Of a stretch of DNA of 64,000 nt, positions 6,225-37,958 are shown in pieces. Every line of letters begins with the position of its first letter. The stretch's first letter is position 1. The notes beneath the pieces were generated by a model. It saw only the letters and a list, made by a program, of their open reading frames with translations, had not been told where the DNA came from and did no database searches. The DNA lies in assembly GCF_963921235.1 (NCBI RefSeq), contig NC_086120.1:34100001-34164000 (forward strand). Reading direction: 5' to 3'. Made by a program: the position numbers and the translations under genes. The stretch is from Mobula hypostoma (Eukaryota).

Positions 6225-6783
6225 GAGAGAGATGGCACCTTTGTGTATATACATCCTTGATGGCTGGTTGGCTGGTGCCAGTGATGGTTGGGCAGTTTTG
6301 ACCACTGATTTTAGAGCCTTCCTATCTGCCACAGTTTCTGTATCATGCAGCTTGCTTGAATGCTTTCTACTGCACGTCTGTAGAATGATGTGTATAGGAG
6401 GAAACCTACGTGGTCACAGGGAGAACATACAAAGTCCTTTCAGACAGTGATGGGATTTGAACCTGGGCTGCTGGTACTGTAAATTGTGCTAACAACTATG
6501 CTACAGAGCCGCCCCAACTTCAGTACATTTATCACTTCAGATAACTTCAGAGATACAGTACTGGAGGAGGCCATTTGAACTGGCTACCCTGATACTTAAT
6601 CTATTTGCAGTTCTTTACAGTTCCTTAAGATGAGGAACTGTGATAGTAAAACTAAGCCTTAATTCTGAGTTTGTTATTAACAATTTAGCTACATTAATAA
6701 TTGAAACACATTCATTATAATAAAATATATAATTTCACTTAACTGGTTATACCCACAATGATCACAATCCAATTACATAATCT

Positions 6784-6789
6784 TTTATT
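6784..6789 (-). terminator. Candidate polyadenylation signal of the REEP6-like paralog
   Basis: AATAAA on the minus strand downstream of the TGA at 6958. Confidence 0.5.
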
Positions 6790-6957
6790 TTTGATCTAAG
6801 ATGGTGCATTGCCAGAAACTTTGTGCACAATCTATTCAAACAACATTTCTTAAGGGAGGATGCATTTGGGACTGTACAGGAGTTTCACTTATGAAGTTCT
6901 GACTGGAAACACTTGGGATACCATCACCTCATTATTTCCCCATTCACAGTGGGCTTC

Positions 6958-7007
6958 TCACTTGATCAATGATTTGCCAAAGATGGCACTTAATTTATTT
7001 CTGCGTG
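6958..7007 (-). CDS. REEP6-like paralog terminal coding exon (A-RRNKLSAIFGKSLIK-stop)
   Basis: Acceptor ttttgtatttcag|CAC is near-identical to the REEP6 terminal acceptor; phase 1; AATAAA about 170 nt downstream. Confidence 0.68.
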
Positions 7008-7120
7008 CTGAAATACAAAATGACCAATCATTAATGTCACAAGAGGTCAATATCGTCAGATAATGCTTTTACTGCCACTTAACCCATCAGGTAAGCCAAT
7101 ACTGTTTATAATTACTTGTC

Positions 7121-7290
7121 TGGCCAGGCAGCACCTATGGAGAAAAGTACAGTCGTCATTCCTGCTGAAGGGTTTCAGCCCGAAACATCGACTGTACTCT
7201 TTTCCATAGATACTGCCTGGCCTGCTGAGTTCATCCAGCATTTTGTGTGTGTTACTTGGATTTCCAACATCTGTAGATTTTCTCTTGTTT
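7121..7290 (+). mobile_element. Penelope pLTR insertion with inverted arm and degenerate hammerhead core
   Basis: Inverted arms at about 7122-7155 and 7189-7222; flanking direct repeat tgtttataatYacttgtc. Confidence 0.8.
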
Positions 7291-8514
7291 ATAATCACTT
7301 GTCCTGTTAGTAAGCCCCACACCATCATCTCTTCTGCACTGAGTTCAAAATTAGTGGCTAGTGTTATCTTTTAATCCCTTTCAAAGGACTCCTGCTTGGG
7401 CTGTCATCCAGCTCAGAAAAAGGAAAGGAAGAGAGAAAAGAAGATTCTAGAGCCAAGCCCATATATTTCAAGAGGTCACCTTACATTCTGTCTTTCCTCA
7501 GAAGAAAACGCTGTCACTCCAGGAATGTTTCTAAGTAAAGAATAGTTTTTCCTTGAACATGGGGTCATAGAATAGAACAGCATGGAAAATAGCCCTTCAG
7601 GCTGACTCATTCGTACTGACTGAAATTAATGCACGATAGAAAGCATTCTGTCTGGATACATAATGGTTTGTTATGGCAATTGCTCTGCAGGTGACCACAA
7701 GAAACTGTAGAAAGTTGTGAGCACAGCTCGGAATATCACAGGAACCAGCCTTCCCTCTGTGGTCTCTGCATATACTTCTTGCTATCTCAGTAGAGTGGGC
7801 AGCTTCATCAAAGACTCCACCCACCTCCGATATTCTCTCTTCTCCCCTTTCTATTGTGCAGAAGATACAAAAGCCTGAAAGCACATATCACCAGGCTCAA
7901 GGATGGCTTCTATTCTTCACCCCCCCCCCATTATTACCAGACTCTTGAATGGATCTCTTGTATGATATGATTGGCTCTTGGCCTTGCAAACAATCTCGCT
8001 ATGATCTTGTACTTTATCTTTGGTAGCTTTTACACATTATTCTGCTTTGCTATTGTTTTGCCTTAGCTCAGTGTGTGATGGTTTGATCTGTATAAACAGT
8101 ATGCAAGACAAGCTTTTCACTGTATGTGACAATAATAAACCACCAATACCAATAGCAAATGCCTATATATTGAAGATGCCATTTTCCTGCATCTGTTCCT
8201 TTTCAGTCTGTGAACCCTGTTGAAGTGCTTTTTAAACCTTGTGATTGTGGCTGTCCTTCCGGCCTCTTGTGGCAGCTTGTTCTATTTGCTCTCGGCATGT
8301 GAAGACCCAGGTTGGACACAGAACCAGAAGATACGGCCTCACCAAAGCCATGCTGATCTGCAACTAGACTTCATTACTTTTGTATTGCATTTCCCTTGCT
8401 ATGAAAGCTAACTCCGCACTCGATGAGCCCATTGTGTTATTAGTCATAAATCATCAGGCAAGTTCCACACTACAATGGATTGATTGAGTGTCTTTATTTT
8501 GAGTTTTGTCTTAC

Positions 8515-8559
8515 CTTTTGGGGTTGAGGTGATGCCAATCATGTCCATTGTTGAGGAAC
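8515..8559 (-). CDS. REEP6-like paralog candidate exon 4 (GSSTMDMIGITSTPK), symmetric 45 nt
   Basis: Strong acceptor ttccctttttcttccag and donor AAG|gtaaga; open in phase 1-1; unique sequence; no homology support. Confidence 0.65.
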
Positions 8560-8785
8560 CTGGAAGAAAAAGGGAAAATAGTGCATATTCATAGAAGTTG
8601 ACTCTCATCTTCCCTAATACAAATCAGAGCTGATTTCACCAATATTCCACTTCAAAATCTTCTCCCTTTCTATTCAGAAGATTTGGGCTCATGGGTTTGG
8701 TGTTAAGGAGCCAAAAAAGAACTTTGCTATCTGACAAATTTGCTCTTGTATAAAACTAGCGAAGTGTTAAACGGTGTGTAATGTG

Positions 8786-8927
8786 AACAACAGGAATTCT
8801 GCAGATGCTGGAAATTCAAGCAACACACATAAACTCTGCAGATGCTGGAAGGGTCTCGGCCTGAAACGTCGACTGCACCTCTTCCTAAAGATGCTGCCTG
8901 GCCTGCTGCGTTCACCAGCAACTTTTA
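8786..8927. mobile_element. Rearranged (inverted) Penelope pLTR fragment
   Basis: pLTR pieces in both orientations; 13-bp flanking direct repeat ggtgtgtaatgtg. Confidence 0.78.
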
Positions 8928-11378
8928 GGTGTGTAATGTGGATGTGTTGTAACTTGCCTGCATTAGGGGGTTTTGGAATTTTGGCCTCTGATGGATGTCC
9001 TTTTTACCCATTGACACCATTGGTGAATGCCTACTTCTGACTAGGCTGTATACATACAGGAATTTCCCCTCTAAACTTCTCTAACTCTCTCTTTCCTTTT
9101 CTTAAATGCCACTTAAAGCCTGCATCTGATCATAAGAACATCTCCACATGTTGCTGGGAGCCAAACTTTAGACATAACACTCTTATGAACACTGTACATA
9201 TTTTGCCATATGTGCCATATAAACCATATGTGAGCCCCCTGCACAGTCCTTTGACCCACAGGCAAAAGTGAATCAATCTTACTTATAGAAGGTGCAGTAA
9301 ATTTTCTGATGTCCCATCCAAACACATTTACCCACCCAGCACAAACTAAAGCTATCTGGTTATCCCTGATTTACTGGCATCAATAACCCAGGAAACCACA
9401 GTTACATTGTGAATAGTCGTCAGCTGATCTGGAGATACCAAAGGGACATTGGATCAACTATTAGCCATTGCTGTGTAATGTCTTTCATGATTACTCTGAC
9501 AGTGTCAGGTGAGGTAATTGGGGAGAGAATGAACTTATCGATGAAGCAACATTGTTGAGTGTAACGTAGCCACAGGAACTCTGTAAGAAAACTTTTGATT
9601 CTGTCCATTACCTTCTCAGATGTTGCCTTGTACAGAGACTGGTAGATTGGTCATCGTGGCTCAAGGTTTCAAAAAGTTGGGAATCAAAGATTAATATGGT
9701 TCTGTAGTGTTTAGCGTAACACTTTACAGTACAGATGACCCATGTTAAATTCCCACTGCTGCCTTTCAGGAGGTTGTACATTTTCAGCACGACCGTATGG
9801 GTTTCCCCCTAGTGCTCTGGTTTCCTTCCACAGTACAAAGATGTTATGTTAATAACATTTAACAGTTGATATGTTAATTGGTCATTGTAAATTGTCCCAT
9901 GATCAGGCTAGGATTAAAAGGGCTGGAAGGACCTACTCCACACTGTATCTCAATAAATAAATATTGTGGCTTCAAGAGGCAGGACTTCCAATGTATATTC
10001 TCACATTTTGTTATGACAAAGAAGGAGTTCATTCACCCATTACCTCAAAGCTGGCTCAATGAGCACCCTTATTAATTTTCCATGCAACATGTTCTCCCTG
10101 CAATTCCATTGACTCCACCCGGTTTCTGTCATCTGCATTCCCCCAAGGGGAAATTCAGAATGATCAATTATCCTTCAAAATCTTTGGAACGGGGGAGAAA
10201 ACTCATGCTCTCCTCTCACTACCAAAACCGGACAGGAGGCATGGGAGCCTTCGGTCGCACACCACCAGGATCAGTAACAGTTATTACCCTACAACTATTG
10301 GGCTCCTGAACCAACATGGATAACTTCACTCAATGTAACTCTGAACTGATTCCACAACCTATGGACTCGCTTTCAAGGACTTGTCAACTCACATTCTCAG
10401 TATTATTTACATTTTTTATTTGCACAATTTGTCTTCTTTTGCACATTGGTTATTTGTCCGTCTTTGTTTATGTATAGTTTTTCATAAATTCTATTTATAG
10501 AAACGTAGAAATCTACAGTACATTACAGGCCCTTCAGCCCACAATGTTGTGCCGACCATTTGACCTATTCTAGAAACTGCCTTGAATTACCCTACCGCAT
10601 AGCCCTCTATTTTTCTAAGCTCCATGTACCCATCTAAGAGTCTCTTAAAAGACCATTTTTTATCCACCTCTATCACCTTTGCTGGCAGCGCATTCCACGC
10701 ACCCACCACACTCTGTGTGGAAAAACTTACCTCTGACATTCCCCTTGTACTTGCTTCCGAGCACCTTAAAACTATGCCCCCCTCATGTTAGCCATTTCAG
10801 CCCTGGGGAAAAAAAGCCTCTGGCTATCCCCATGATCAATGCTCTCATCATCTTATACACCTCTATCTTATATTTCTTTATTTTTCTGCAAGAACCCGCA
10901 AGAAAATTAATCTTAATGTATTATATGGTAACATATACGTACGATGATAATCAATTTAATTTGACTTTGAACTAGAGCAGGTGATGGGAACTGATGGATT
11001 GCTGGAGCTATGAGGCCGTAGCTCTACTGTTTGTGCCACTGGGTCTCCCACTTGCGTTGAGAAGTGATGCACATATTTATTTAGTAAGACTGAAATACTT
11101 GGACTTTTTGCCTTTTAATCTGCTTTAAAGTGTTACCGGAACCCCCGGGGTCTTGTTCTAAAGGTTAGGCATTAACTTTAACCTAAGCCTTCTCACTGTC
11201 ATACATTCCCACAGAATAATGCAACATAGAATGAGCCCATTGACCCACCATGTCGTTAAGTAACCGTCCATACTAATCTCCTTTTCCAATACTTAGCCTT
11301 CAATGAATGGATGCATTAAGTGGTACATTGCCTCACATGGTAGTAGGGTTTGACACATTCTGATCAGGTCCGCAGTAT

Positions 11379-11763
11379 TACATAAGAACATATGAAATAG
11401 GAGCAGGAGTAGGCCATTTGGCCTGTCGAGCCTGCTCCACCATTCAATAAGATCATGGCTGATCTGGCCATGGACTCATCTCCACCTACCTGCCTTTTCC
11501 CCATAACCCTTAATTCCCCTACCATGCAAAAATCTATTCAACCTTGTCTTAAATATATTTACTGAGGTAGCCTCCACTGCCTCATTGGGCAGAGAATTCC
11601 ACAGATTCACCACTCTCTGGGAAAAGCAGTTCCACCTCATCTCTGTCCTAAATCTATTGCCCTGAATCTTGAGGCTATGTCCCCTAGTTCTAGTCTCACC
11701 TACCAGTGGAAACTTCTATCCCTTTCATAATTTTATATGCTTCTATAAGATGTCCTCATATTC
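11379..11763 (-). mobile_element. CR1 LINE 3' end
   Basis: acataagaacata tail; near-identical to other CR1 3' ends in the window. Confidence 0.82.
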
Positions 11764-13439
11764 TTAAGCCTGAGGTCATGGTCCTCGGCAGTTACAATGA
11801 CATAGGCAGGAAGGATAATGAGCTCCTGCAAAGTGAGTTTGTGAGTTAGGTGCTAAGTTAAAGAACAGGGCCTCCAGGGTGGTAATCTCAGGAATGCTAC
11901 CAGTGCCACAAGCTAGTCTGGCCAATAAAAGGAAGATAATGCAGTTTAACACATGGCTAAAGAGATGGTGAAAGAGAGGATTTCAGACTTCTCTTTCATT
12001 GGGCTCTCTTCCAGAGAAGGTGGGACAGTTTGCACCTGAACTATAGGGGGACAAATATCCTTGCGGGAAAGTTTGCTGGTGAAGCACCAGCATGTTTGAA
12101 CTGAGGTGCGGGTTGGTGGGAATCAGAGTGGCTGATCAGTAAGTGGAGTGGTTGTGGGGAAAGTAGATTAATCCTACACGCAGAGTCAGAAACCAGAGGC
12201 GGAGCATAGTGGGACTTAAGTTCAGAGTTGCACGTATTTCAATGCAAAGAGTATTGTAGGTAAAGCAAATGGACTTAGAGCATGTTTAAGCATAGGTAAT
12301 TACAATGTTGTTTCCATTAGTGAGACCTGGTTGAGGAAGGAGCAGGACTGGCAGCTCAACGCTCTGGGGTTCCATTGTTTTAGACACGATGGAGGGTACC
12401 AAAGGGGAGGAGTGGCGTTAATCATTAGGGAAAATGTCATGGCAGTACTCAGAGAGGACGTACTAGAGGGTTCATCCACTGAGGCAATATGGGTGTAACT
12501 GAGGAATAAGAAAGGTATGACCACCCTTAATGGGGGTATATTATAGACCTCCCAATGGTAGGCAGATTTTAGAGCAGCAAATTTGTAGAGAGATAGCAGT
12601 CAACTGCAAGAAAAATAAGGCTGTGATAGTTATTGATCTTAATTTTCTGCATATTGACTGGACTCCCATACTGTAAACAGACTGAATGGGATAGCTAAAT
12701 GTGTTCAGGAAAGTTTACTTAATCAACACGTAGAGGTCCCAATTAAAGAGGGCATGATTACTAGAACTCCCCTTAGAGAATGAGACAGGGTAGAGAACAG
12801 AAGTGTGTGTAGTAGAACACTTTGGATATAGTGATCATAATTCCATGAGTTTCAAGATAGCTATAGAGGAGGATAGGACTGATCTTCAGGTTGGGATTCT
12901 AAATTGGTGAAAGACCAATTTTTATGGTATCAGAAGAGATCTCTCAGGTATGGATTGGGATAGGTTTTTTTTCCCTCAGGCAACAGGATGCTTATTAAGC
13001 AGAAGGCTTTCAAAAGTGAAATACCGTGAGTACAGATTTATAGGTTCCTGTTAGAATAAAAGGCAAGGCTAACAGGTTTAAGGAACTTTGGGGTACAGGA
13101 GTCCCAATGAAAGATCTTGGATCAAAACATCCATTCTTTGTTCCCCTCCATAGATGTTACTTGACTTGCTGAGTTCCTCCAGCATTTTTTTAAGGATATA
13201 TAAGTATTTGGATTGACATTAGGAATATTCAAAATGGTTTTGTGTGTGGTAGGTCATGTCTAACCAATCTTGTAGGGTTTTTTGAGTTGGTTATGAGGAA
13301 GGTTGATGAAGGAAAAGCTATGGATATTGTCTACATCAACTTTAGTAAAGCCTTTGACAAAGACTCACATGGGAGGCTAGTCCAGAAGGCTGAGTTGCTT
13401 GTCACTCCAGGATGACATAGTAAATTAGATTCAGCAATC

Positions 13440-13610
13440 CAAACAGGAGAAAATCTGTAGGTGCTGGAAATCCCAGCAGCACACACAGAATGCTAGAGGA
13501 ACTCAGCAGGCCAGGCAGCATCTATGGAAAAAAGTACTATCGATGTTTTGGGCCGAAACCCTATGGCAGGACTGGAGGAAAAAAATCTAGAAGATGGGGG
13601 GAGGGGAGAA
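13440..13610 (-). mobile_element. Penelope pLTR fragment nested in CR1
   Basis: Same pLTR sequence, interrupting a CR1 RT region. Confidence 0.75.
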
Positions 13611-13734
13611 CATTTACTTAGCGGGAGAAGACAGATAGTTGTAGTAGATGGTTTTCTCACTGACTGGAGGCCTATGACCATTGTTGTGCCTCAGATTTCG
13701 CTGCTGGTCAATTGTTGCTTGTCGTCTATCTTCA

Positions 13735-13993
13735 GCTGTCCATCGATTTTCGATGTTGACTGAGGCCTGGGCAAGGTTGTATGGAAGACTGGCAGTTGCC
13801 CATGTTGCAAGTCTCCTCTCTCCATGCCACTGATGTTGTCCAAGGGAAGGGCTCTAGGACACATACAGCTTGGCACCAGTGTCGTCGCAGAGCAATGTGT
13901 GGTTAAGTGCCTTGTTCAAGAACTGAGCTGAGGCTCGAACTAGCGACCTTCGGATCACTAGACTGACGCCATAACCACTTGGCCACGTGCCAC
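13735..13993 (-). mobile_element. tRNA-derived SINE nested in CR1
   Basis: Pol III A box TGGCCAAGTGG and B box GTTCGAGCC on the minus strand; duplicated flank ttgtcRtctat. Confidence 0.78.
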
Positions 13994-14651
13994 ACTATAT
14001 TAATTGTCATCTATATTAATGACTTAGATGATAATGTGGCAAACTGGATCAGCAAATTTGCAGATGACACCAAGATTGGAGGCAATGTGGACAGTGAGGA
14101 AGGCTATCAAAGCTTGCAGAATTTTCTCAATCATTTGGCAAAATAGGCTATACGTAGCAGATAGATTTTAATGTAAACAAGTGTGAAGTGTTGCACGTTG
14201 GCAGGACAAACCAGGGCAGGACTAAAGCAGAGAATGGAAGGGTGCTGAGATGTGCAGTAGATCTGGAATACAGTGCCATAACAAGAAAGTGGTGGCCCAG
14301 TTAGAGCCGTAAAGAGAGCTTTTGGAACTCTGAGATGGAGTGAGACTAGAAGTAGAGGTCATGGTTTAGGGTAAATAGTAAAATATTTAAGGAGAACATG
14401 AGGGGAAAGTTTTTCACTTAGAGGGTGGTGCAAGTGTGAAACAAATGGCCAGTGGAAGTGGTGAAGGCGGTTCCAATGCAACATTTAAGAGAAGTTTGTA
14501 TCGGTATGGAAGGCTATGGTCCTGGTGCAGGTAGATGGGACTAGGCAGAAAAACAAGGTGGTATGGATTAGATGGGCCAAAGTGCCTGTTTCAGTGACTA
14601 GATACTTTGTAAATTTTCATTCTCTAAAACTTAGTCCAACACTAATTTTAC

Positions 14652-14811
14652 CCTCTGGCTTGATATCATCATCTGTGGTTTCGAAAGATTTTCTGTTGAT
14701 TTCCTCCACCGTGGGTTTTGGCGTGTAGACGAAGGGATGGATGACCTTCGTGTAAATAATATGAGAACCATTCCAGTCAACGGGTGCCATGCACCACAGC
14801 AGAAGGAGAGT
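14652..14811 (-). CDS. REEP6-like paralog coding exon 3 ([54 protein letters not shown])
   Basis: [17 protein letters not shown] conserved; acceptor ctctgcag, donor gtaaaa; 160 nt; phases match REEP6 exon 4. Confidence 0.92.
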
Positions 14812-16169
14812 CTGCAGAGTGAAATAACAAGACTTTTACATACACAGCAAGCCTTCAGGCATGAGCAGGACAATAGATTGAGTGGCATTCCACTTGGATT
14901 TGACTTCCAGTCTAACTTAGCTCAATACAAAGTGCTGCAGTGTCTATTAAGTCTGGGTAAGTTAAAATAGGATCGTTATCTCATTTGTATTTATAGAGAG
15001 GGCCTGAGATGCTGTTTATACTGTCATGAGGTGTGGTAGATTGATCTTTCACCATTTCAGTTTTATTGTAACAAAAGGGATCTGCTGCTTGAACCCCATT
15101 AGGAAAGTTTGTTAGCTTTGATCCAACTTAAAACAGCAAAGGGAAATAATAAGCCATCTTGTCCAGTTCCTAATATTCTAATATTAATGTAATATTAAAA
15201 AGAACTTCAACAGTGCACCGTGTGACTTAGTGGATGGAATAGTGTAAAATAAGGGCACCATTATTTTGTTAACTAACATAACTGGGATATCTGTGTTTGT
15301 AGCTCAATGTTAATTAGTGATCCAGTGATTTTTCAAAGGCTTCACCAGGTAAAGCCCTTTCCATGTAGTCAAGGGAAATCACTTGAATCAACATAATTTG
15401 TGACCTTAGTGCAGAATTATATCATTTGGTCCTTCAACCTGGTCCACCATTCAATAAGAGTTTGGCTTCATTATCTCTCTGATTATTCCTTATGACCTTC
15501 TCCACTATAGTCCAAATTTTATCTGTCTTGTCTTTAAGTGTATAGTAATATACATTGAAAGTAACTAAGGCACTGATCCCTGTGCCTTCCTAATTACAAC
15601 TTCCAACCTAAAAATGACTTAACTCATTTTTCAGAAAGTTAGTTAACATTCTTTCTTTGTAAATTTATGTTATTACTAATTCCATGAGCTTCTGTCTTTC
15701 GGAATAATGACATGCCACTCCATCCAGTGCTTTTTGGAAATCCAAATAGATTACATCAACTGGCTCCCTTTATCCTCATGGCACCCATGCATTAAGAGGA
15801 GTTGAGTTCCGAGAAAACAGTCCGTATCACAATTTTATGTATAACACAAAGCTGCATTGTCAGTGCCTTATTCAAGAAATATGAGATAAAAATAAATTCT
15901 GTGTTAATGTATTTACATTTTCCACATTGTTTTTGTATCTGTATTTCAAATTCTAGGGTCATGAGTTGTGAATTCCACAAGGGCAGATTTCCATTACCTA
16001 AATGGCCATAACATGGAGATTGGCTGTGTCTTTATGACATAGGACAAGGTCCCACCCAACCTTTTTATGTTAATTGCCCTATCATTAAACGAGGGCTCTG
16101 TGAAATCCAGGATGTGATCCCCTAATATAGAGAATATTGGCTTTTAAATAGCACACTAAATCCTAAAAA

Positions 16170-17230
16170 AAGGGATAATGAGGTATAGTTCATGGGTTTA
16201 TGGACCCTTTAGAAATCTGATGGCAGAGGGGAAGAATATAGATCTTCAGGCACTTGTACCTCCTCCCTGATGGTAGTAACGAGAAGAGAGCATGTCCCGG
16301 ATGGTGACAGTTCTTAATGATGGGTGCCGCTTTCCTGAGGCACTAATTCTTAATGATGCCCTCAGTGGTAGGGAGTGTTGTGGCTGTGATAGAGCTGGCT
16401 GAGTCTACAATACTCTGCTGCCTCTTGTGATCCTGTACGTTGCAGGTGCCATACCAGGCTGTTTGCCACCAGTCAGAATACTCTCCACTGTATATCTACA
16501 GAATACTCTCTCACTGTATATCTACCGAGATGCAACACTGAGCGTCATAGGAAGTCATTTCTGCCTGTGGCCATCAAACTTTACAACTCCTCCCTTGGAG
16601 GGTCAGACACCCTGAGCCAATAGGCTGGTCCTGGACTTATTTCATTATTTACTGGCATAATTTACATATTACTATTTAAATATTTATGGTTTTATTACTA
16701 TTTAATTATGGTGCAACTGTAACGAAAACCAATTTCCCCCGGGATCAATAAAGTATGACTAAGAATCTATAGAATTTGTCTCTAACATATATTGCAAAAA
16801 ATACAGTAGGTCAACTTCCTTTAAAAAAAATGACGACTTTTAGCATCACATTATTCTAATCTTTATTTACACAATGAATAGTTTCAAGAAAAGTTAACCA
16901 AACACGGCACGATTTGCTTCTGAGTACAGCAGAATCAGAATCAGGCTTAATATCACCAGCATATGTCATGAAATTTGTGAACTTAGCAGCAGGAGTACAA
17001 TGCCATACATGATAATATAGAAAAAAAGAATTACGGTATGTATATATGTATATTAAATAGTTAAATTAAAAATAGTGCAAAAACAGAAAAAAAAGTGAGG
17101 TGGTGTTCATGGGATCAATGTCCATTTAGAAATTGGATGGCAGAGGGGAAGAAGCTGTTCCTGAATTACTAAGTGTGTGCCTTCAGGCTTCTGTACCTCC
17201 TTCCTGATGGTAACAATGAGAAGAGGGTTC
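16170..17230 (-). mobile_element. Cluster of Rex1/Babar-like LINE 3' fragments (also about 7630-8160, 10200-10500, 43050-43520, 44250-44620, 56215-56480, 62345-62650)
   Basis: Recurrent segment reading RRYRSLK.HT..FRNSFFP on the coding strand; family assignment from memory. Confidence 0.65.
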
Positions 17231-17686
17231 TTTGATGTGATTGACTGCTCCGCCAACTCACTAGGTGCCAGTTTTGCCTTTAGATGATGACTGGCAGATG
17301 CAGGCACCAACAAAGGAAAGCCTTGCTACGGAAATCACTAGACTCATATCAACATAGAACCTATGGCCTCACTTACAAGGACTCTACTGCTCATGCTCCC
17401 TGTATTTATTTGTTTGTTTCCATTTGGTTTTTGTTTGTACTTGCACAATTTGTATAGTTTCTTATTGATTCATTGATCTACTGAGAATGCTATGGGGACA
17501 TAAGGTGTACGTAATTTGATAATGAATTTACTTTGAACTTTAGATGTTTACAGGGAGATTGCCCCAGTTCAAAGGGAGGAGCTGTTGTTTCACGGCTGAC
17601 TACAATTTCTGATCTCTTGTGTCCACTATTTTATTCAGCTGAAATTAAATGAGGACCAGAAGACAGAGGTGAATATTGTTACATAC

Positions 17687-17825
17687 CTTCAATTTATAAA
17701 AGGCTGGAAATGCATAGAAGAGGATGCTTGCCACACATTCAACGATAGCAAATGTGCCATAGATCACCCAATAACTAAGCCACTTCAATTTTTCCTTTTT
17801 ATCGGCACTTTCAATAGCTAAAACT
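17687..17825 (-). CDS. REEP6-like paralog coding exon 2 (VLAIESADKKEKLKWLSYWVIYGTFAIVECVASILFYAFPAFYKLK)
   Basis: 139 nt like REEP6 exon 3; 23/46 aa identical by hand alignment; acceptor ttctcag, donor gtatgt; inside supplied ORF 17645..17980. Confidence 0.93.
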
Positions 17826-18489
17826 CTGAGAATAATCAAAACATCAAAGGCAGTTACAGCAATTTTGCATTTGATTATTTGTATAAACAAATTAGAAAAC
17901 TTTTTATTTTCCTCCTTCCTCACCTTTTTACTTTTTACCTTAACATGGACATGAGATAGCCATTTAGCCCCTTGCAGCATTCAATAAGATCAAGAATATC
18001 GCCAACTTCATTAGGATATATTTTCCGATAATGAAAATATCCCGGTAACAAAATCAGATTATTAAAAAATAATCTATGGACCAGGAACAATGACGGTATT
18101 ATTCTTCGCTATTGCCCTAAGTGGTGGTAATGGTGAACAGCTATCTCGAGTCACTATTTTTGCCTTGAACAACTTGCCCTTCATGCTATTGGGTAAGGGG
18201 TTCCAGAATACAGACCAAGCAACAAACCTATGATCTAAAACATCCCCTAATTATCATTAACAATTGAAAGTATCAGTTGCGGATTTTATAAAAACGTTCA
18301 AGATGTTCACCACACTCCAAATTTTTTACCATCTTCAAACCCACTCTTCATGAGCCTGATCAATGTTATCAGATGCTTAGACCATGAGGAAAGTCACAGC
18401 AAAATTTGATTTTTCTAATTTGATACATTTATTCACATCAATATAAGATTCAGTGCTTAATCTGCATGCACAATATATTCATGTCATCT

Positions 18490-19312
18490 CCAGCCACAGG
18501 CAATGTCTGGAGGACTGGCAAGTAGCTAATGTTGTTCCATTATTCAAGAAGGCAACCAAGGATAATCCAGGAAACTATAGACTGGTGAGTTTCACGTCAG
18601 TGGTAGAGAAGTGGTACAAGAGAGAATTCTTAGGGATAGGGTTTATGAGCATTTGGAAAACCATGGCCGAATAGGGAGAACCAGCATAGACAAGTCATGC
18701 ATAAACATGCAGGACAAGTCGTGTCTTATTCACTTGATTAAGTTTTCTGATGACATTACAAGAGTGATTGAAGAAGCTAGAACTGTGGATATTGTCTACT
18801 GGATTTTAGTAAGGCATTTGACAAAGTCCTTCATGGGAGTCTCATCCAGAAGATTGAGATGCATGGGATCAAAGGTGAATTGGCTGTTTGGATTCAGAAC
18901 TGGCTTGTCAATAGAAAACAGAGGGTAGTGGTCAGTGGGACTTATTCTAGCTGGAGGTCTGTGATTAGTGGTGTTCTGCAGGCGTCTGTACTGAGATCTC
19001 TTCAGTTTATGAAGTATATCAATGATCTAGATAAAAATGTAGATAGATTGGTTAGTAAGTTTGAAAATGATATGAAGATTGGTGGTGTTGTAGATAGTGT
19101 GAAAAACTGACAAAGATACAGCGGGATATAGACCAGTTGTCGATATGGGCAGAGAAATGGCAGATAGAGTTTAGCCCAGCCAAGTGTGAGATGTTGCACC
19201 TTGGGAGGTCAAATTTAAAGAGACAATATGCAGTTAAATGCAAAACCATTAACAGTGATGTTGAGTTCCAAGTTCATAACTCCCTGAAAGTGGTTACACA
19301 GGTTGATAGAAT
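18490..19312 (+). mobile_element. CR1 LINE RT fragment
   Basis: EDWQVANVVPLFKK..PGNYR; WIQNWLVNRKQRVVV; YINDLD..SKFENDMKIGG. Confidence 0.9.
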
Positions 19313-19556
19313 AGGTAACGAATTTCAACATGTTTTAACTTAACGGCCAAAAGCACAACGTGAAAGGATTAAATGATAAGAGAGTTATTTGAACTTTCTA
19401 TTCTCTACCTGGCTCAGGTGTGTTACCAGGAATGACTGCTGATGGAAGTAAAACTTATGGGTCACAATTGATATGAGAAATGCACTACGGACAATGGTGC
19501 AGTGATGTGAATCACTACCCTCTGCTGGTACTTTACAGGCAGTGTATTGTGTATGG

Positions 19557-20347
19557 TAGGGGTCCCCAACCCTTTTTGCACCGCGGACCGGTTTAATATT
19601 GACAATTTTCTTGCCGACCGGGTGGGGGGGGGGTGTTAATCACGACTGGAATATAGGTGATAAGTCAACTATAAGTCACTCAATTTCATTTCTAAAAGGG
19701 TTTATCTAATGAATTTAATATTAGACACACAGCGCATATTTTCCTCGTATGAACATATAAAGTCATTGCAACACACCAATATCGCTGAATCAGTGGGAGC
19801 CCTGGGCTTGTTTTCCCGCAACAGCATGGTCCCATCGAGGGGTGATGGGAGACAGCGATACTCGAAAGGGGTTCCTTATGTCCAGTCTATTCTGCAATTT
19901 AGTTTTCATTGCATTCATTGCAGAAAACTCTGCTTCGCAGCGATATGGAAGCAACGTTTTCAGTGCTTTTGTGGCTATCTCAGGATATTCAGCCTTGACT
20001 TTGATCCAGAATGCCAGCGGAGATGTTATGTCAAACCTACTTTTCAGCCCACCGTCATTTGCAAGCTTGAGGAGTTGATCTTTTTCCTATGCTGACATGG
20101 ATGATTCACTGGGGACATTCACAAATGGGTCACGGACCCATTCCTCTGCACGTCTTGGGTCACTTGCATCTTGGGTCACTGATGACCTCGCGTGTGTTCA
20201 AGCTCAACAGTGCGTGACAGGGAATGAGGAAAGGTGAAGCTGAGTCATATCGCTTCATATTGCCAAATTATATCATTTCCTTGCAGCCTGGTAACACATG
20301 CTTTGCGGTCCTGTACCGGTCCGCGGCCTGGTGCTTGGGGACCACTG
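19557..20347 (-). mobile_element. Non-autonomous hAT (Charlie/Buster) DNA transposon with C-terminal transposase remnant
   Basis: TIRs TAGGGGTCCCCAA / TTGGGGACCACTG; perfect 8-bp TSD gtgtatgg. Minus strand reads FWIKVKAEYPEIATKALKTLLP..CEAEFS..KTKLQNRLD..QAQGSH* (hAT dimerisation domain). Confidence 0.93.
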
Positions 20348-20426
20348 GTGTATGGCTGTGTGATGGGTTTGCCTGCAAGAGTAGGTGTTGTTGGGTGGGT
20401 TGGAGTAAGCATCATATCTACTTAGG

Positions 20427-20815
20427 AACACACACAAAATGCTGGAGGAACTCAGCAGGTCAGGCAGCATCTATGGAAATGAACAGACAATTGACTTTTC
20501 AGGCTGAGACCCTTCTTCAGGACTGACAAGAGAGGGGAAAGAACACAGATGCCAGAATACAAAGGTAGGTGAGTGAGGGGAAGAGAGGCTAGCTGGAAGT
20601 TTATACAGTAGGTATTGACAGGTGGATGGGACAGGTCAAGGGCTGGAGAAGAAAGAATCTGATAGGAGTGGACTATAGGAAAAGGGAAGGAGGAGGGGAC
20701 CCAGAGGGAAGTGATAGGCAGGTGATAGGCAGGTGAGAAGTCGTAAAAGGTCAGAGTGGGGAATAGAGGAAGGGGAGAGGGAATTTGTTTCCCGAAAGGA
20801 GAAATCGATATTCTG
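20427..20815 (-). mobile_element. Penelope-like pLTR/3'UTR fragment with hammerhead motif (20488-20525)
   Basis: Homologous to 61780-62185; minus strand reads CAGTC-CTGAAGA-A-GGGTCTCAGCCT-GAAA-AG-TC-AATTG. Confidence 0.82.
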
Positions 20816-21079
20816 TTTAGGGTTGCACAACTATTGCTAGTATCTGCTGTGTATTCATTAAACCTATTGTATATTACTGTCACTCTTATCACTTCCCACT
20901 AGGTATGAAAGAAACTGCTGTTTGCCCCTCTCCTTATTTCTATCCACAACTCTGTCTAGTTGGGTGATTTCATATTGGTAACAGGTGACCACCATTCAGT
21001 GTCTTACCACAGAGTGATCTCTGGGCTGAGAAGGGATGTACAGCCATAGTGGTGACAGCCGCCCATGGAAGTGAGTAGG

Positions 21080-21560
21080 TAGTCTATGTTTTGGGCCGAG
21101 ACCCTTCTTTGGGAACGAGAAGGAAGGAGGAAGATGCCAGAATGAAAAGGTGGTGGGGGAAGGGAAAAGAGGCTAGCTGGAAGGTGATTGGTGAAGCCAG
21201 GGGGGGTTAAGAGCTGGAGAAGGAGGAATCTGATAGGAGAGGAGAGTGACCCACAGAAGAAAGAAGGAGGGGACCTGGGGGAATTAATAGACAGGTGAGT
21301 AGAAGTAAAGGGTTAGAATGGGGAGGAATTTGATTATCAGAAGAAGAAATCGATATCCATGCCATCATGTTGAAGGCTACCCAGGCAGAATACAAGGTGT
21401 TGCTCCTCCACCCTGAGGTAGCCTCATCTTGGCACAAGAGATGGCCATGGGCTGACATCTCAGAAAGGGGGTGGGAATTGGAATTAAAATGTTTGGCCAC
21501 TGGGAAGTCCCGCTTGTGGCGGTACTCATCGGCGTAGTCCCCCGATGTAGAGGAGGTTTA
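21080..21560 (-). mobile_element. Penelope-like fragment (endonuclease C-terminus plus degenerate pLTR)
   Basis: AKHFNSNSHPLSEMSAHGHLLCQDEAT is homologous to ORF 61621..61812. Confidence 0.8.
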
Positions 21561-24500
21561 AGATGACACTGGTGAATCTCAGTGGCCTCTGGCAGGTGGC
21601 CGATGAAACAAGGGAAACAACTAAACACTTTGTTAATCACTCTTTTTCTGGTAAATGATCATCGCAAATGGTCTGTAACTTTCCTTCAGACTTGGAGGTA
21701 ATTCAGTGTGGCAGAACCCAGGCAAGTCGAGGCAGTGGGCCCATCACCAGGTGTGAGGAAGACCAGAGGTTTGATCAATTTAAGCACTTGGCCAACTTAG
21801 AAAGGCTGAGTACAGGCTGAATCGAGGCGCTGAGATCCAGGCCTCAGAGCCTACCCGAGTGATTCAACCTGATATTTGGACGATGATTTATGCACCTGGC
21901 TAGAGGAAAAGGTCAGGGTGTCAGGGCCCAAGGCACCTCTCTGCTCCGCACTGCACTGAAGTAAGAGTCTGGGGCTGAGCTCTCTGTGGACTTCCATTCA
22001 AAATACTATTTGCTTGTGTTGTTTGCATGATTTGTGTTTTTTTTTCCTTCTGCACAGTGGGTGTTTGACAGTCTTTTTAATGGGTTCTTTCAGGTTTCTT
22101 TGTTTCGTGCCTGCTGGTTAGGAGACAAATCTCAAGGTTGTATAATATATGCATACTTTGACATTTTGAACTTGTTTCATCATTCAGTGAAATCAACACT
22201 GCATTAACTATGCTCAATTTTCTTCTCTTCTTAAGCCCATCACCTGTACTGAGTCACAGTCCTCCGTCCTGAGCCAGTCATTTAAGTTTTCCCAGGTGTA
22301 GCCCATCTTTTTGGTGTATCCAACCTCTTGCAAGGATGAGGTCTTTGGAGCTTTTGATGGCATTTCTGTAGTATTGTTTTTTAAAAAAAATAGTCCCAAG
22401 TCCAACCCTCCCCTTTTCACGTCATACTTGGGAGCAGCCAAACAGAATTATTTTTCTTCCCAGGCATCTATTTCAGTGAACATTCATATTGCAATTCCTT
22501 TGTGTGAACAAGTGCTTTAAGTCTCTTCCAATGCTCTGCCTCAGATTTTTAAGGATTACCTTTGTTTGTCCTATTATACTCCCCCACATCGTACTCAAGG
22601 GGAAGTGTGGAGGAATGGATAACTACAGCCCTGTTCCTTTCATTATTAAAAACCGTGATCAGATAAACCTTGTGCATTCCAGGACCAACGTGGAGTAGCT
22701 AGAACTGTTGATAGCTCAGAGGAACTTTAATCAGAGTATTGTGTAATTGCAATTAAACTCTCCAGCTGTATATTCCAACCTTCCAGTTATGAATGCGCAA
22801 TACTGATTCTGCACGCACTCTTAATTTCTTTGAATCAGCACTGTCCCTTGCCTTTCACCAACTAGATTGCCCTTTTACCCTATAGTGGATGATCCTATAT
22901 CCCCTATATCATATTTAAGTTTTTATGATATTATTCTGTATGTGATACTTTTTCAGGACATTTGAGTGGCATATGCTGCAAGACTAGGTAAATGGGGCAC
23001 AAGCTCACACTAACCAATCTCACAATTCCTACTCTTCACCGAAACCACCAATTAATTCCTTAAATAAGTTTACCATCCTAAACTCCTGTCAATTAAGCAA
23101 TTCTTTCTGCTGTTCTGTTACCATTTATAAAAAAAGATCAGAAACTCCTCCAGAAATTTACCATTGACAGATAGTTGACTGCCAGTTTCTAAGGTAACTT
23201 CATTCTGTACACTTGTGTAATTAAAGGCCTGTGCCCACATCCACTATTGTTTCATTTAGTTTTCTGCAAGTTTTGAGGAGGTTGCAAGCACTTCATGTGA
23301 GCTGTTGTTTATCATCTGCTCTGAGGATGAAAATTTTTTAAATCTTCATTAAAATGCAAATATTCTTAGTTACTGCAGTATCCAATAATAGTATTCAGGA
23401 AAAGAAAATTGATCCATTCCAGTTGGAAGCAAGATTGTTTCTTTGTAAGAGAACTTGTTCAATTATTTGTTTTAAATATGTGACTCCGAAAACAAGGTGC
23501 AGGAGCATATTATTCACTTCCTTGACCTTGCTCAGCCACGCAATAGGATCAAGGCTAAGCCAATCTTAGATTTACTTTCATCTTCCTACTCAATCCTTCA
23601 GAAATCTGCGGCCCATATAGAAGGCTTCTGTATCATTAAGATACAGAATTAATGAGTTGCTGTGGCAGAGAGTCAAAGCAAAACACAAAGAGCAAATGGT
23701 CTCCTTTACACTGTTATTGTTGGATTCTTCTATGAACCCCCAATAGGTCTGGAATCCAAAAGTTTGTCATAGACTTTAATATACTTAAGACTCCAATTCC
23801 AAACCTCCTTGGGTGCGATTTTCCAAAGATCTGCAACTCCGAGAGAAAAAGAATTCTCAGTTTACGCTTAATGTCCTCAAGATCCAGATTCTGTCTGCCA
23901 GTAGAAAAATCTTTCTCTCACTGCCCATTGCCTCATGTTTTCAAAATGGGATTGTTTCTCAATCTTCTGACCTCCAATCTGCACAAATTTTCCTTAACAG
24001 CGAGAATAATTTAGTAAATCTCCATGCAAAATATGGAGACAAAAATTGCTTGCTGTGCTCTGGGTTCAGGTTCAAGATCTTTGTAACTGTAACAAACTTT
24101 CCCCAACTACAACCAGATGGCACAGACTCAGAATACAAATATGTCCCTTCAGAACAGAGATGAGGGAGTATTTCTTTAGGCAAAGGAAGCCATTGCCACA
24201 GAAGGCTCAGGAGGCCATGTCATTGGGTATATTTAAAGCATAGGTTTAAATTTTGTTTAGTGAGGGCGTAAGAGATTACAGGGAGAAAGCAGGAGAATGG
24301 GATCGACGGGAAGAATAAATCAGCCATTATAGAATGATGGAGCAGACTCGATGGTCCGAATGACCCACGCTCCTATGTCTTATGGTCTTCAAGAAAGTTA
24401 ACTAAATTAAATGCAAGTTATGTATTCTTTCTTGTAAAGAAAAATTATAGTAAGTTTTTGTTCCCTCATCCTTGCAGCAAAGGCTACCATTCCATTGTCT

Positions 24501-25239
24501 CCAATTACATTTTGTATTGTTACACAGTTCTCCTAATCTGTCTGCATTTCAACAATATCTATTTTTCCTACCAGTGGATAATCTCACAACTATTCACATT
24601 CTATTCAAATTGATGGTTTAATTCCTACCCCCCACCCCCATACAGGCAGTTTCCTTCTCTCCTCATTTAGTAAAATAACTTAAAAGCACAAGCTTAGATC
24701 TTATTACATCCCTTGAGAGAAAACAAAATTAAATCCTATAGGGATTAATGAAATCTTGCCATTGTACTTCTTCCCCTCTTAACGTAGCAGATTTGCTTCT
24801 GATGAGTTAATTTACAAATTCATTATCGTCAAAACAATGCAATTGTAGAGCAGCTAATCAGTAAACTTTAGATATTTATAAGTAACCAAAGCTATCAAGA
24901 AAGTGCAAAGGTTGACAACATATCTGAATAAATTAATCATTGGCATCCTTTCACAGGATTGAAATGTTACTCCACATGACCTTTGGATGTGCTGTCGACA
25001 ATTCATCCATTGTAGGGCTCAATGTGGAAGGAAAACTGCAACTGAATTTGAAGCAACAATTTATTGGTGACTTAATTTGGTGGTGGTGGTGGGGGGTGGT
25101 GTTGGAAAAACACTCATCTCAAAAACTCCAGACTTGGCTAGTGGAGGAAGGGATGGACAGAGTGAGAGGAAGCTAGTTACTATCTTCATTTCTTATTAAA
25201 ATGTAACTTTCCATTGAGGAAAGTACGTCCTATACTTAC

Positions 25240-25370
25240 GAAAAGTAGGCTGGATAGAGGAAAACAATCACGTTAAACCAAGTGAACAAGGATGGCCCAA
25301 ATCCAAGTAGTGAACACAAGGCAACCAAAGCGATCAAAGTGCGGACAAATCGAGACACACTCAGAGACAT
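25240..25370 (-). CDS. REEP6-like paralog coding exon 1 (MSLSVSRFVRTLIALVALCSLLGFGPSLFTWFNVIVFLYPAYF-S), homologous to REEP6 exon 2
   Basis: GFGPSL...FLYPAYFS matches GYGASL...FVYPAYFS. Same phase-2 donor TC|gtaagt. ATG has A at -3 and an in-frame upstream TGA. Confidence 0.88.
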
Positions 25371-25550
25371 CGTTTCTCTTTTCGAATCCTCTGTTCAGCT
25401 CCAACTGTTACACCATCTCTTGGTGGTGAAGGATGCGTTACTAGGCTGCGGCAGGAATCAAGTGACATCACAGAAGGATTTATGTGGTCAGAAACGAGAG
25501 CCTAGCATGTGTGGGCATCAGAAACTGGGAACTCAGTACACACAAATCAG
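25371..25550 (-). promoter_or_regulatory. Candidate compact promoter/5'UTR of the REEP6-like paralog
   Basis: MYB-like CCAACTGTTA 25401-25410, X-box-like GTTACTAGGCTGC 25437-25449, CRE-like TGACATCA 25463-25470. Confidence 0.4.
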
Positions 25551-28028: not shown

Positions 28029-28069
28029 TTATTTTATGGTCCTCAGTTGTTTTCGCCTTTTATCAAGTG
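28029..28069 (-). CDS. reep6: REEP6 terminal coding exon (A-LDKRRKQLRTIK-stop); exon-5-skipped protein is 185 aa
   Basis: Acceptor tttgtattacag|CA, phase 1. Followed by about 2.5 kb of repeat-poor AT-rich sequence. The acceptor and IK-stop end resemble the paralog terminal exon. Confidence 0.7.
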
Positions 28070-30214
28070 CTGTAATACAAAAGAATTAATAAAATCAGAA
28101 ATATCTTGAAATGTAATATGGCTGCTATATTTGCATGTAGAGGTAGGAACAACTTGGGGGGGGGAGGGGGGCGGAGATGGCTGCAATGTTATCAGTAGTT
28201 TTTATAAATCACCAGGTACATCTTTAACAATGGTCAACTTGTTCCATTAAAAAAAAGTTAACTTGTCCCACTCCACCCAAAGTCTCTCTGGCTATCCATC
28301 CCATAGGGTGATGATGGTTCCTTTCAGTCAGTTAGTGGGGTAACTACCCCACTCCCCAGAAAGGAACAGCGTGTGCGTGAGTGGATTTTAGATGAGTAGA
28401 GGGTTGCACAGGTCCAGACCCACCCTCTCGATATCCCCTCCCAGATCCAGTGGCATGATGGGGTTCAAGATGGCTGGGGCAAGTTCTGCTGCAGTGAATG
28501 GCCAGACCAAGCTTCGATACAGGGGATGCCCTTTCCGTGCTTCACGGCACGTGTTTGCTAGATGGCCGTTGACCCTGACAGGGTTCATCCGCCCAAAGTG
28601 ATCAATGTATATGTCACCCTGAGATTCACTTCCTTGTAAGCGTTCAGTGGAATAAATACAACAGAATAAATGAAAAACTACAAAGACTAACAATGAGAGA
28701 CAAACTGAGTAAATATGAAAAATGGTAAATAGATAAATAATACTAAAAGCATGAGCTGTAGAGGACTTGAAAGTGAGCCCATAGGTTGTAAAATTTGTTC
28801 AGTGTTGAGGGGAGTGAAGTTTTCCCCACACTGGATCAGGAGCTTGATAGTTGAAGAACAATAACAGTTCCTGAATCTGCTGGTGTGGAACTCAAGCAGG
28901 GCTTTGAAATAGTAACATAGCTTTCTTTTCCTGACCACGTTCCGCTATAGAAGTAAAGCTCCAAAGCCCATCAGTTCATATACCTTTTAAAATCCAATAT
29001 ACCTACTACTGCAAAATTCAATCTCCATGCTCTGTCTCAAGTAGCACTTGTAATTGTGCCAATCTTGTTGGACATCATCCTAAGCAAACTGATGCATATT
29101 TTATGGCATCCCATCAAAAGGCAATTAGATGCATAGATAATGAGAATATAACATGGGTACTACATATGATCTCTACAAAATCCATAATCCAACTAACAAT
29201 AATTGTTATCTCCCTCACATATCATTGATTGGTAGATTCTCTTTTGAAGAAAGACAAGTGATTAGGCTTATATCCACTGGAGTTCAGAAGAATGAGAGGG
29301 ACATAATTAAAACACACAAATCTGGAGGGTTTTGACAGAGCAGATGTGGATGTTTCTTCCTCTGGGAGAATCTACAATTAGGGGTTACAGTTTAAAAATA
29401 AGGGCCAGTCTATTGAAGACAGACAGAAGACAATTGTTTAAAAAAAAATTCTGGACTGCTGAAAATCTCCAAGGACAACTTGAATGTTTTTTTTAAAAAA
29501 AAACAGATAGATATAGATTCTTAGTAAGCAAAAGGGTGAGACATGACTCTGTAGATGGGGACGCAAGGTTAAGGTCACAAATACTAATCACAATTTTAGT
29601 AAATAGTGGATTATGCTCAAGAGGCTGAGTAGGCTATTATTACTTCTAATTTATATGCTTATATGCATTTCATTATACAGCCACTCAACGTGCCATAAAT
29701 TAGCATATTTCACTGTGGGCAAGGAAACAAATCTCACACCAACACATTTCTATTCAGTGTTTAACCACACCAGAGGCTGGAAATGATGAACAATAATTAT
29801 TTTTCTTTGCAGACAGGTCAACAGCTTCAAGCAAGTTGGTAGGAGGAATATAGACAATTCAGAGGGAAAAAGAGTTACTTACCCTTGAGGATTGAAAATC
29901 TGGCACTCAGTGCCTAAAGTTATGGATGTGGAAACTGTCAAAACATTTAAGATGTGTCTGCTAGAGCCCTTCACACCTATGGGTTGTGGGAGTAACTCAA
30001 TTGGTTGCAATTTTTAAGCCAGCATGACATAATTATTTTCAAAACCTGCATAATTGCTCACTCCGCTATTGAAATCAAAGATTGAAGTTTTTCCAACATT
30101 TAATTGTTTTTCACTGGTTTATAGAGACATTAAAGAATAATACAGGTCAAATCTCAACAAGGAATATGTTATTAAATTGTTAAAAATAAACATCTGGATA
30201 AATTAAAAAAAAGA

Positions 30215-30425
30215 CAGGCAAGAGAGACCATAGATGCAGGAAGTCTCAATCAACACACAAAATGGCGAAGGAAGCAGATCAGGCAGCATCTGAGGAGGAA
30301 AATGAACCACCAGCACTTTGGGCCAGGACTCTTAATCAGGACTTGGGTCTCGGCCTGAAACATCGGCCGTTCAATTTCCTCCACAGATTCTGCCTGATCT
30401 GCTGAGTTCCTCCAGCATTGCGCAT
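30215..30425. mobile_element. Inverted pair of Penelope pLTR fragments
   Basis: Two oppositely oriented copies joined at the hammerhead region near 30342. Confidence 0.72.
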
Positions 30426-30973: not shown

Positions 30974-30994
30974 TCAGTCTACAGACAGCTGAGT
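30974..30994 (-). CDS. reep6: Candidate REEP6 small exon (whole exon 30949-30994) encoding TQLSVD-stop after the 74-nt exon 5
   Basis: Pyrimidine tract, ctaat branch-like motif and ttaag acceptor; strong donor G|gtaagt at 30948; open in phase 0 to TGA. Acceptor choice is ambiguous. Confidence 0.4.
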   Translation of the reverse strand, partial: TQLSVD

Positions 30995-37884: not shown

Positions 37885-37958
37885 AGATGTTTCAGCTAAC
37901 TGTTTAGGTCGTGCATCTGGCCTTACGAGGCTCTTGCTGTTAGATAGAGTCTGCAAAA
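37885..37958 (-). CDS. reep6: REEP6 alternative exon 5 (VLQTLSNSKSLVRPDARPKQLAETS), likely homolog of the rod-isoform REEP6.1 exon
   Basis: Acceptor gtcttgctttag in phase 1 gives VLQTL..., like the VLQVL... start of the human REEP6.1 insert. Donor gtatgt (74 nt) or gtaatg (78 nt, end 37881). Confidence 0.8.

Follow-up and report, generated by a model that had tools for sequence, protein, structure and literature searches.

A REEP6-like tandem gene under relaxed purifying selection in cartilaginous fishes

Introduction

Does the REEP6 locus of Mobula hypostoma hold a second, functional member of the receptor expression-enhancing protein (REEP) family, and if so, from which gene did it arise and how does its product differ from the known ones? 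The question is raised by a stretch of 64,000 nucleotides (nt) of DNA (NCBI RefSeq assembly GCF_963921235.1, contig NC_086120.1, positions 34,100,001 to 34,164,000 of the forward strand), hereafter the window, whose positions are used as coordinates throughout. An earlier reading of the letters alone, the sequence-only reading, had described an intact but strongly diverged tandem paralog of REEP6 in this window and had proposed that it is an old, lineage-restricted extra REEP kept by selection. We call this gene REEP6L, which is our own label and not an accepted name. Here, we present evidence that REEP6L is a functional protein-coding duplicate of REEP6, held under purifying selection and probably encoding a variant protein for shaping the endoplasmic reticulum (ER), with its own promoter. 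We put the probability of this joint reading at roughly 80%, and its functional part is inferred.

Results

An intact five-exon gene downstream of REEP6

REEP6L lies on the minus strand and has five coding exons:

25370..25240, minus strand: exon 1, 131 nt; ATG start, donor GTAAGT, ends in phase 2
17825..17687, minus strand: exon 2, 139 nt; AG/GT, ends in phase 0; cytosolic loop (VLAIESADKKEKLKW) and third transmembrane helix (TM3)
14811..14652, minus strand: exon 3, 160 nt; AG/GT, ends in phase 1; TM4, a predicted C-terminal amphipathic helix and a further helix
8560..8516, minus strand: exon 4, 45 nt; AG/GT, phase 1 to phase 1; Ser/Thr/Pro-rich linker (GSSTMDMIGITSTPK)
7007..6958, minus strand: exon 5, 50 nt; AG acceptor, basic C-terminus (ARRNKLSAIFGKSLIK), TGA stop

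The exons add up to 525 nt, that is, 174 codons plus the stop, with GT-AG borders at all four introns and no stop, frameshift or splice-site loss in Mobula. The conceptual protein is identical to RefSeq XP_062888679.1 (P0001), named “receptor expression-enhancing protein 6-like” of Mobula hypostoma, and the annotated gene span of 18,413 nt coincides exactly with 25370-6958. The exon structure of the sequence-only reading was therefore confirmed to the base, and its question of whether the gene is annotated is answered: REEP6L is a real, intact gene that is already in RefSeq.

The intron phases are 2, 0, 1 and 1. The earlier claim that they equal those of REEP6 holds for the first three, which match the homologous REEP6 introns, while the fourth falls outside the matched set. 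The count of 23/46 identical residues between the core exon and that of REEP6 was reproduced exactly. The pairing of exons had to be corrected, since exon 1 of REEP6L is the homolog of REEP6 exon 2 (49140..49047) with about 31 new 5' nt that hold the ATG, and REEP6 exon 1 has no counterpart. Exon 1 of REEP6L encodes a short N-terminus (MSLSVSRF...), TM1, a luminal turn with a two-codon insertion, and TM2 as far as YPAYFS. The Pfam family PF03134 (TB2/DP1/HVA22) matched exon 2 with 43.8 bits (cut-off, 27.2; E=2.5e-11) and exon 3 with E=2e-4, where the profile continued at positions 53-77; the whole 174-aa protein has a precomputed PF03134 assignment and belongs to this family.

In REEP6, as judged from the 185-aa isoform, nothing corresponds clearly to exon 4. 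In Leucoraja erinacea, isoform X1 of the REEP6L ortholog (P0269, 188 aa) contains two consecutive 15-residue units that resemble exon 4, DLSTVAKNVTASTPK and DLSPVAKKVTTSSPK, so that this small cassette exon may have been duplicated in tandem there.

One orthology group across cartilaginous fishes

Nine further species have annotated orthologs, 170-177 aa long: the batoids Rhinoraja longicauda, Leucoraja erinacea and Narcine bancroftii, the sharks Cetorhinus maximus, Scyliorhinus canicula, S. torazame, Rhincodon typus and Chiloscyllium plagiosum, and the chimaera Callorhinchus milii. REEP6 lies directly upstream of REEP6L on the same strand in every locus examined. In Mobula, Scyliorhinus, Rhinoraja, Cetorhinus and Callorhinchus, the three genes are ordered REEP6, REEP6L, UPF0449; the loci fetched from Narcine and Rhincodon contain REEP6 and then REEP6L, with UPF0449 outside them, and Leucoraja yielded no locus. 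The UPF0449 gene downstream of REEP6L encodes a product of 112 aa (PF15136). Human C19orf25 (UPF0449) is located close to REEP6 on 19p13.3, and this proximity, together with the UPF0449 gene next to REEP6L, indicates that the locus is the REEP6 locus.

We rebuilt the coding sequences from genomic DNA of four of these species, which together with Mobula gave five loci. Their exons, in order from 1 to 5, were as follows:

Rhinoraja: 131/139/157/45/50 nt, GT-AG introns, no stops
Narcine: 131/139/157/45/50 nt, GT-AG introns, no stops; exon 5 located by blastn
Rhincodon (whale shark): 131/139/157/48/50 nt, GT-AG introns, no stops; full 174 aa
Callorhinchus: 131/139/154/39/50 nt, GT-AG introns, no stops; 170 aa

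Exons 1, 2 and 5 are exactly 131, 139 and 50 nt in all five loci, and the GTAAGT donor of exon 1 is conserved. The five-exon plan is thus common to batoids, sharks and the chimaera, in agreement with the proposal that the gene is old. The RefSeq models of two of these orthologs are too short: those of whale shark (124 aa; L003:3861-21353) and Callorhinchus (133 aa; L006:8662-11404) miss exon 1 and skip or read through exon 4.

When 1.84 billion cluster representatives were searched exhaustively with HMMER, four proteins of the REEP6L type were recovered, all from cartilaginous fishes, the rest being ordinary REEP5/6/HVA22 proteins, and a word-indexed profile search likewise found the type in cartilaginous fishes only. 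The lineage restriction proposed earlier is borne out at the level of annotated proteins, which were what these searches covered; none was found outside cartilaginous fishes, and raw bony-fish genomes were not searched. We conclude that REEP6L is present across cartilaginous fishes and is absent elsewhere as far as annotated proteins show. The group exists only as automatic RefSeq/Ensembl models, named inconsistently as REEP5-like or REEP6-like and in several cases truncated, and full-text literature searches (shark REEP6 paralog, “REEP6-like”, “reep6l”) found no paper on it. REEP6L adds a previously unrecognised member and orthology group to a well-known family and is no new kind of system.

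Purifying selection on the coding sequence

The ratio of nonsynonymous to synonymous substitution rates (dN/dS) was calculated by the Nei-Gojobori method in pairwise comparisons among four species (six comparisons), for the whole gene and for a core of codons 1-120, which covers the four helices and the next helix. For the whole gene, dN/dS was 0.28-0.64, below 1, and the proportion of nonsynonymous differences (pN) was lower than that of synonymous differences (pS) in all six pairs (Fisher p from 0.036 to 3e-10). For the core, dN/dS was 0.26-0.52, with Fisher p<0.01 in each of the six. REEP6 in the same genomes gave 0.09-0.15; the nonsynonymous rate of REEP6L is 3-4 times higher, and the constraint on it about 3-4 times weaker. 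No disabled ortholog was found among the five loci. In a blastn comparison of the Mobula and whale shark loci, only five segments were collinear, namely the promoter with exon 1, a short element of intron 1, and exons 2, 3 and 5, and the remaining matches were dispersed repeats. The reading frame and splice sites that are intact in the five loci and the deficit of nonsynonymous differences in every pair bear out the claim that the gene was kept by selection: purifying selection acts on REEP6L, though clearly less strictly than on REEP6.

Origin from REEP6

A maximum-likelihood tree was built from 46 sequences under LG+C20, with REEP5-type proteins, recognised by the PSPSNGAE motif, as the outgroup; an aberrant Dipodomys REEP5 model was dropped from the second tree. 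REEP5 separated from REEP6 plus REEP6L at 99/94. REEP6L formed a clade of its own (100/100) on a stem of 2.3 substitutions per site, compared with 0.1-0.3 for typical REEP6 branches. Its position inside jawed-vertebrate REEP6 was an unresolved fork. The tip branches were 0.39-0.41 in Mobula, 0.40-0.45 in Narcine and 0.24-0.27 in Leucoraja (about 0.4 with the shared skate stem). As a separate REEP6 lies upstream in every species and the REEP6L proteins have a clade of their own, the gene is a paralog, not REEP6 itself, and it does not group with any known non-REEP6 gene.

Alternative placements were compared by approximately unbiased (AU) tests:

REEP6L with elasmobranch REEP6 (first tree): p=0.35, not rejected
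REEP6L with cartilaginous-fish REEP6: p=0.26, not rejected
All REEP6 as a clade excluding REEP6L: p=0.215, not rejected
REEP6L with REEP5: p=0.169, not rejected

The description of the gene as a tandem paralog of REEP6 is therefore upheld by the same-strand tandem synteny and by the tree, whereas the AU tests reject none of the alternatives. One of these is a derivation from REEP5, in keeping with the fourth test and with the name “REEP5-like” that NCBI gives to some orthologs. It is hardly credible: in all species examined, REEP6L is the tandem neighbour of REEP6 within the REEP6/UPF0449 locus, the tree joins it with REEP6 at the node given above, and it carries the REEP6-type motifs YPAYFS and WCMAPV.WNGS where REEP5 has PSPSNGAE. 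Origin from REEP6 is the best reading, because of the tandem linkage, these two signatures and the absence of the first exon, as expected from a partial tandem duplication.

The date of the duplication is bounded only by the split between chimaeras and elasmobranchs. This split took place about 400 million years ago. The duplication could also be older than cartilaginous fishes, so that REEP6L would be a REEP6 paralog of jawed vertebrates or of an earlier ancestor that was lost in bony vertebrates. The third AU test leaves room for this, as do the fork shared with all jawed-vertebrate REEP6 in the free tree and the long stem. However, grouping with cartilaginous-fish REEP6 was likewise not rejected, and the two database-wide searches returned no bony-vertebrate protein of the REEP6L type. 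Proteins of the sturgeon Acipenser sinensis (P0044) and the paddlefish Polyodon spathula (P0097) carry PF03134 together with PF15136, as if fused from REEP6 and UPF0449, which suggests that the two genes are direct same-strand neighbours there, with no paralog between them; this is a further, weak hint against an older origin. We regard such an origin as a serious alternative, if a rather unlikely one.

Evidence for a separate promoter and start codon

The ATG of REEP6L lies only about 2.7 kb past the REEP6 stop and about 195 nt past an AATAAA, which raises the question of whether the two form one transcription unit. Two stretches flanking the coding sequence are conserved:

25426..25494, minus strand: conserved block 56-124 nt upstream of the ATG, likely core promoter or 5' untranslated region (UTR)
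6776..6957, minus strand: 3'UTR with AATAAA at 6789..6784, from an alignment of Mobula, Rhinoraja and Rhincodon

The upstream block (25494-25426) is better conserved than any other part of the locus: in a four-species alignment, 64% of its columns were invariant, compared with 53% in exon 1 and at most 13% further upstream. The block is also recognisable in Callorhinchus and is thus conserved in five species. It holds the invariant motif TGATGTCA, which from its consensus may be a cyclic AMP response element (CRE)/ATF-like site, and a second motif, G[C/T]AGCC-T-[A/G]G[T/A]AAC. In Mobula the latter reads GCAGCC-T-AGTAAC and, from its resemblance to the consensus, may be an RFX X-box-like site. 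At the other end, a motif directly after the stop, GAAGCCCACnGTGAATGGG (6939-6957, minus strand), is kept in Mobula, Rhinoraja and whale shark, and a related GTGAATG follows the stop in Callorhinchus. The conserved upstream block and the conserved 3'UTR with its AATAAA argue that REEP6L has its own promoter and polyadenylation site.

Alternatively, REEP6L might be an alternative 3' exon block of REEP6, transcribed from the REEP6 promoter and exon 1 and giving chimeric proteins with the N-terminal region. Besides the short distance between the genes, a RefSeq model of S. torazame (P0271, 192 aa) fuses the REEP6 exon-1 peptide to REEP6L exons, and an AG that precedes the Mobula ATG by 20 nt would be in frame with the donor of REEP6 exon 1 in Mobula and Rhinoraja. 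However, this AG has no pyrimidine tract, and in Narcine and Rhincodon it is out of frame or a stop follows; exon 1 of Mobula contains no phase-1 acceptor, seven RefSeq models begin at the REEP6L ATG, and the S. torazame model may be an artefact of homology-driven prediction. The ATG, the MS.SVSRF N-terminus and the highly conserved upstream block are kept in the five loci, which fits a promoter and a start codon of the gene's own. On balance, a shared transcription unit seems quite improbable. We also considered an upstream coding exon spliced at a conserved AACAG and rejected it, as the frame across the motif is unconserved in Narcine and Rhincodon.

Two elements in intron 1, both collinear with their matches, are possible intronic regulatory elements, as judged from their conservation:

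24856-24921, minus strand: conserved element, 77% to whale shark, overlapping a longer match in two rays
23376-23483, minus strand: conserved element, 82% to Rhinoraja and 80% to Narcine

Predicted architecture of the protein

AlphaFold2, run with a 34-sequence alignment, predicted helices at residues 5-21, 25-49, 53-82, 86-98, 104-118 and 125-136 and a disordered tail beyond the last of them. A Foldseek search with this model returned REEP6, REEP5 and YOP1 at probability 1.0, with alignments that start from their residue 33-35. The AlphaFold2 helices and hydropathy windows agree on four hydrophobic segments in two hairpins (TM1-TM4), as expected of a REEP5/6 protein. The N-terminal cytosolic amphipathic region that is likewise expected of REEP5/6 is absent: the protein begins four to five residues before TM1, without the approximately 35 residues encoded by REEP6 exon 1.

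Two stretches are retained in the paralog: the conserved loop PAY..AIE..KWL.YW and the segment WCMAP..NGS..Y...RP. The predicted helix 104-118 follows TM4, and hydrophobic moments of up to 0.59 were found in the orthologs in NIIRPFFYKAK; the Mobula sequence is altered there (R to H, F to V), and a conserved KP follows. Between the REEP6 and REEP6L clades, 38 positions are conserved in both and eight are fixed differently; among the clade-fixed changes (REEP6 numbering), K72L and D82K alter the cytosolic loop, F100C and S102A lie where TM3 begins, and L145Y follows TM4.

Other features of the locus

The neighbouring REEP6 gene, also encoding a PF03134 product, lies upstream of REEP6L:

28029..60877, minus strand: REEP6, coding exons 60877..60763, 49140..49047, 42728..42590, 42342..42174 and 28069..28029
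37959..37894, minus strand: alternative REEP6 exon of a long isoform, encoding VLQTLSNSKSLVRPDARPKQLA

The coding exons of 115/94/139/169/41 nt give a protein of 185 aa, which is named REEP6-like isoform X2 [Mobula hypostoma] (P0011). The alternative exon matches the long REEP6 isoforms of Hemitrygon and Rhinoraja and may correspond to the long isoform known from mammals. The last coding exon of Mobula REEP6 (28069..28029, minus strand) encodes ALDKRRKQLRTIK, and the C-terminus of REEP6 in other elasmobranchs is A(L/M)KLHLEK.K..; no terminal exon of the KLHLEK type was found within the window. Either the Mobula terminal exon is peculiar to its lineage, or it has diverged.

Short dispersed repeats at 20432-20541, 13483-13562, 7159-7248, 8848-8920 and 11396-11721 had many non-collinear matches in the Rhinoraja and whale shark loci and look like short interspersed elements or other transposon families common to elasmobranchs. 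Within the introns of REEP6L, open frames at 13979-14143 and 18453-19110 (both plus strand, opposite to the gene) contain reverse-transcriptase-like motifs such as FADDTKIGG and, from the FADD-type motif, are probably decayed copies of long interspersed elements. Six intronic open reading frames matched no Pfam family at E<=0.01, Rfam gave no match over the whole window, and a tandem-repeat scan returned one trivial array.

Discussion

Several observations weigh against the view of REEP6L as a functional, selected REEP6 duplicate with an ER-shaping product. The constraint is weak for a REEP, and the C-terminal 50 residues gave dN/dS of about 0.6-1.1, mostly indistinguishable from neutral. For Mobula and Narcine, the bootstrap interval of dN/dS reaches 1.02, and the Mobula copy alone has changed at seven sites that do not vary among the other eight orthologs (one to five private changes in other elasmobranchs). 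Two AU tests leave competing origins standing, namely those with REEP5 and with all REEP6 as a clade excluding REEP6L. The confidence of the AlphaFold2 model is low (mean pLDDT, 64; pTM, 0.34), and the Foldseek TM-scores are below 0.5. No sequence from a Logan run assembly fell in any 90%-identity cluster of REEP6L. What we say about the localisation and oligomerisation of the protein and about the factors at its promoter we infer from sequence.

The points that concern Mobula might mean that its copy is decaying or non-functional and that the open frame survived by chance. The Mobula pairs do have the highest dN/dS (0.46-0.64). However, the private changes are mostly conservative (Y to F, L to F, R to H), dN/dS in the core is 0.34-0.52 in the Mobula pairs (p<0.01), and frame and splice sites are intact. 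The promoter block and the 3'UTR are conserved in Mobula, and its terminal branch is similar to that of Narcine. Decay is thus a very improbable explanation, and we retain the reading of REEP6L as a functional gene.

We propose the following course of events. A partial tandem duplication of REEP6 that omitted exon 1 would have taken place before chimaeras and elasmobranchs split, and the copy would have acquired, immediately ahead of what had been exon 2, a new start codon and a promoter of its own. The copy would then have diverged very fast, giving the long stem, and later have come under moderate purifying selection. The protein would insert in ER membranes and stabilise their curvature by forming oligomers, either with itself or with REEP6 or REEP5. 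The block with the CRE-like and X-box-like motifs could confer separate, probably cell-type-restricted, expression.

In REEP5, the N-terminal region, consisting of two amphipathic helices and TM1, is a major factor for localisation to the bulk ER, and REEP1-4, which do not have such a region, are found in a vesicular compartment (PMC11455953). The cytosolic loop and the C-terminal helix modulate oligomerisation (PMC10162974), and the C-terminal amphipathic helix is required for tubule networks (PMC7835363). Because REEP6L has lost the N-terminal region and carries clade-fixed changes in the loop and changes after the C-terminal helix, its oligomerisation, choice of partner or localisation may differ from that of REEP6. 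More speculatively, REEP6L may represent an uncharacterised seventh vertebrate REEP lineage, specific to cartilaginous fishes, without the N-terminal helices and with a recharged loop. Its CRE-like/X-box-like promoter, kept for about 400 million years, would direct restricted expression in spermatids, photoreceptors or other ciliated cells, and the protein would serve a differently localised curved-membrane compartment or modulate REEP6/REEP5 oligomers. We offer this wider scenario tentatively, and it is more likely to fail than to hold in full.

In textbook accounts, vertebrate REEP5/6 biology is a matter of two genes, but a third has persisted in cartilaginous fishes for about 400 million years. 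This third gene lost exactly the N-terminal region that was recently shown to influence the position of REEP5 in the ER, and it is a natural deletion variant that could be used to probe the N-terminal helices, the loop and the C-terminal helix in oligomerisation and localisation. Behind the names “REEP5-like” and “REEP6-like” and the truncated models of whale shark and Callorhinchus stands a single coherent orthology group. In practice this has a modest impact, as a refinement of the gene family.

Among the known REEPs, REEP6 is the closest counterpart. It shares with REEP6L the PF03134 domain, the strand and locus, intron phases 2/0/1, the 139-nt core exon, the YPAYFS and WCMAPV.WNGS motifs, and a basic last exon that opens with the same split Ala codon. 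The two proteins are about 39% identical overall and 50% identical in the core exon, but REEP6L is without the N-terminal 35 residues encoded by exon 1, has a two-residue insertion in the TM1-TM2 turn, and contains the extra 45-nt Ser/Thr/Pro exon. REEP5 and Yop1p, which shape ER tubules, resemble REEP6L in the predicted order of four transmembrane helices, a putative C-terminal amphipathic helix and a further helix, with Foldseek probability 1.0, whereas REEP6L has neither the N-terminal amphipathic helices nor the REEP5-type PSPSNGAE motif. REEP1-4 resemble REEP6L in having no REEP5-type N-terminal region; however, they also have no TM1 and possess a long disordered C-terminal tail, whereas REEP6L keeps TM1 and is derived from REEP6 according to the tree and synteny. 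The N-terminal architecture of REEP6L is therefore intermediate between those of REEP1-4 and REEP5/6.

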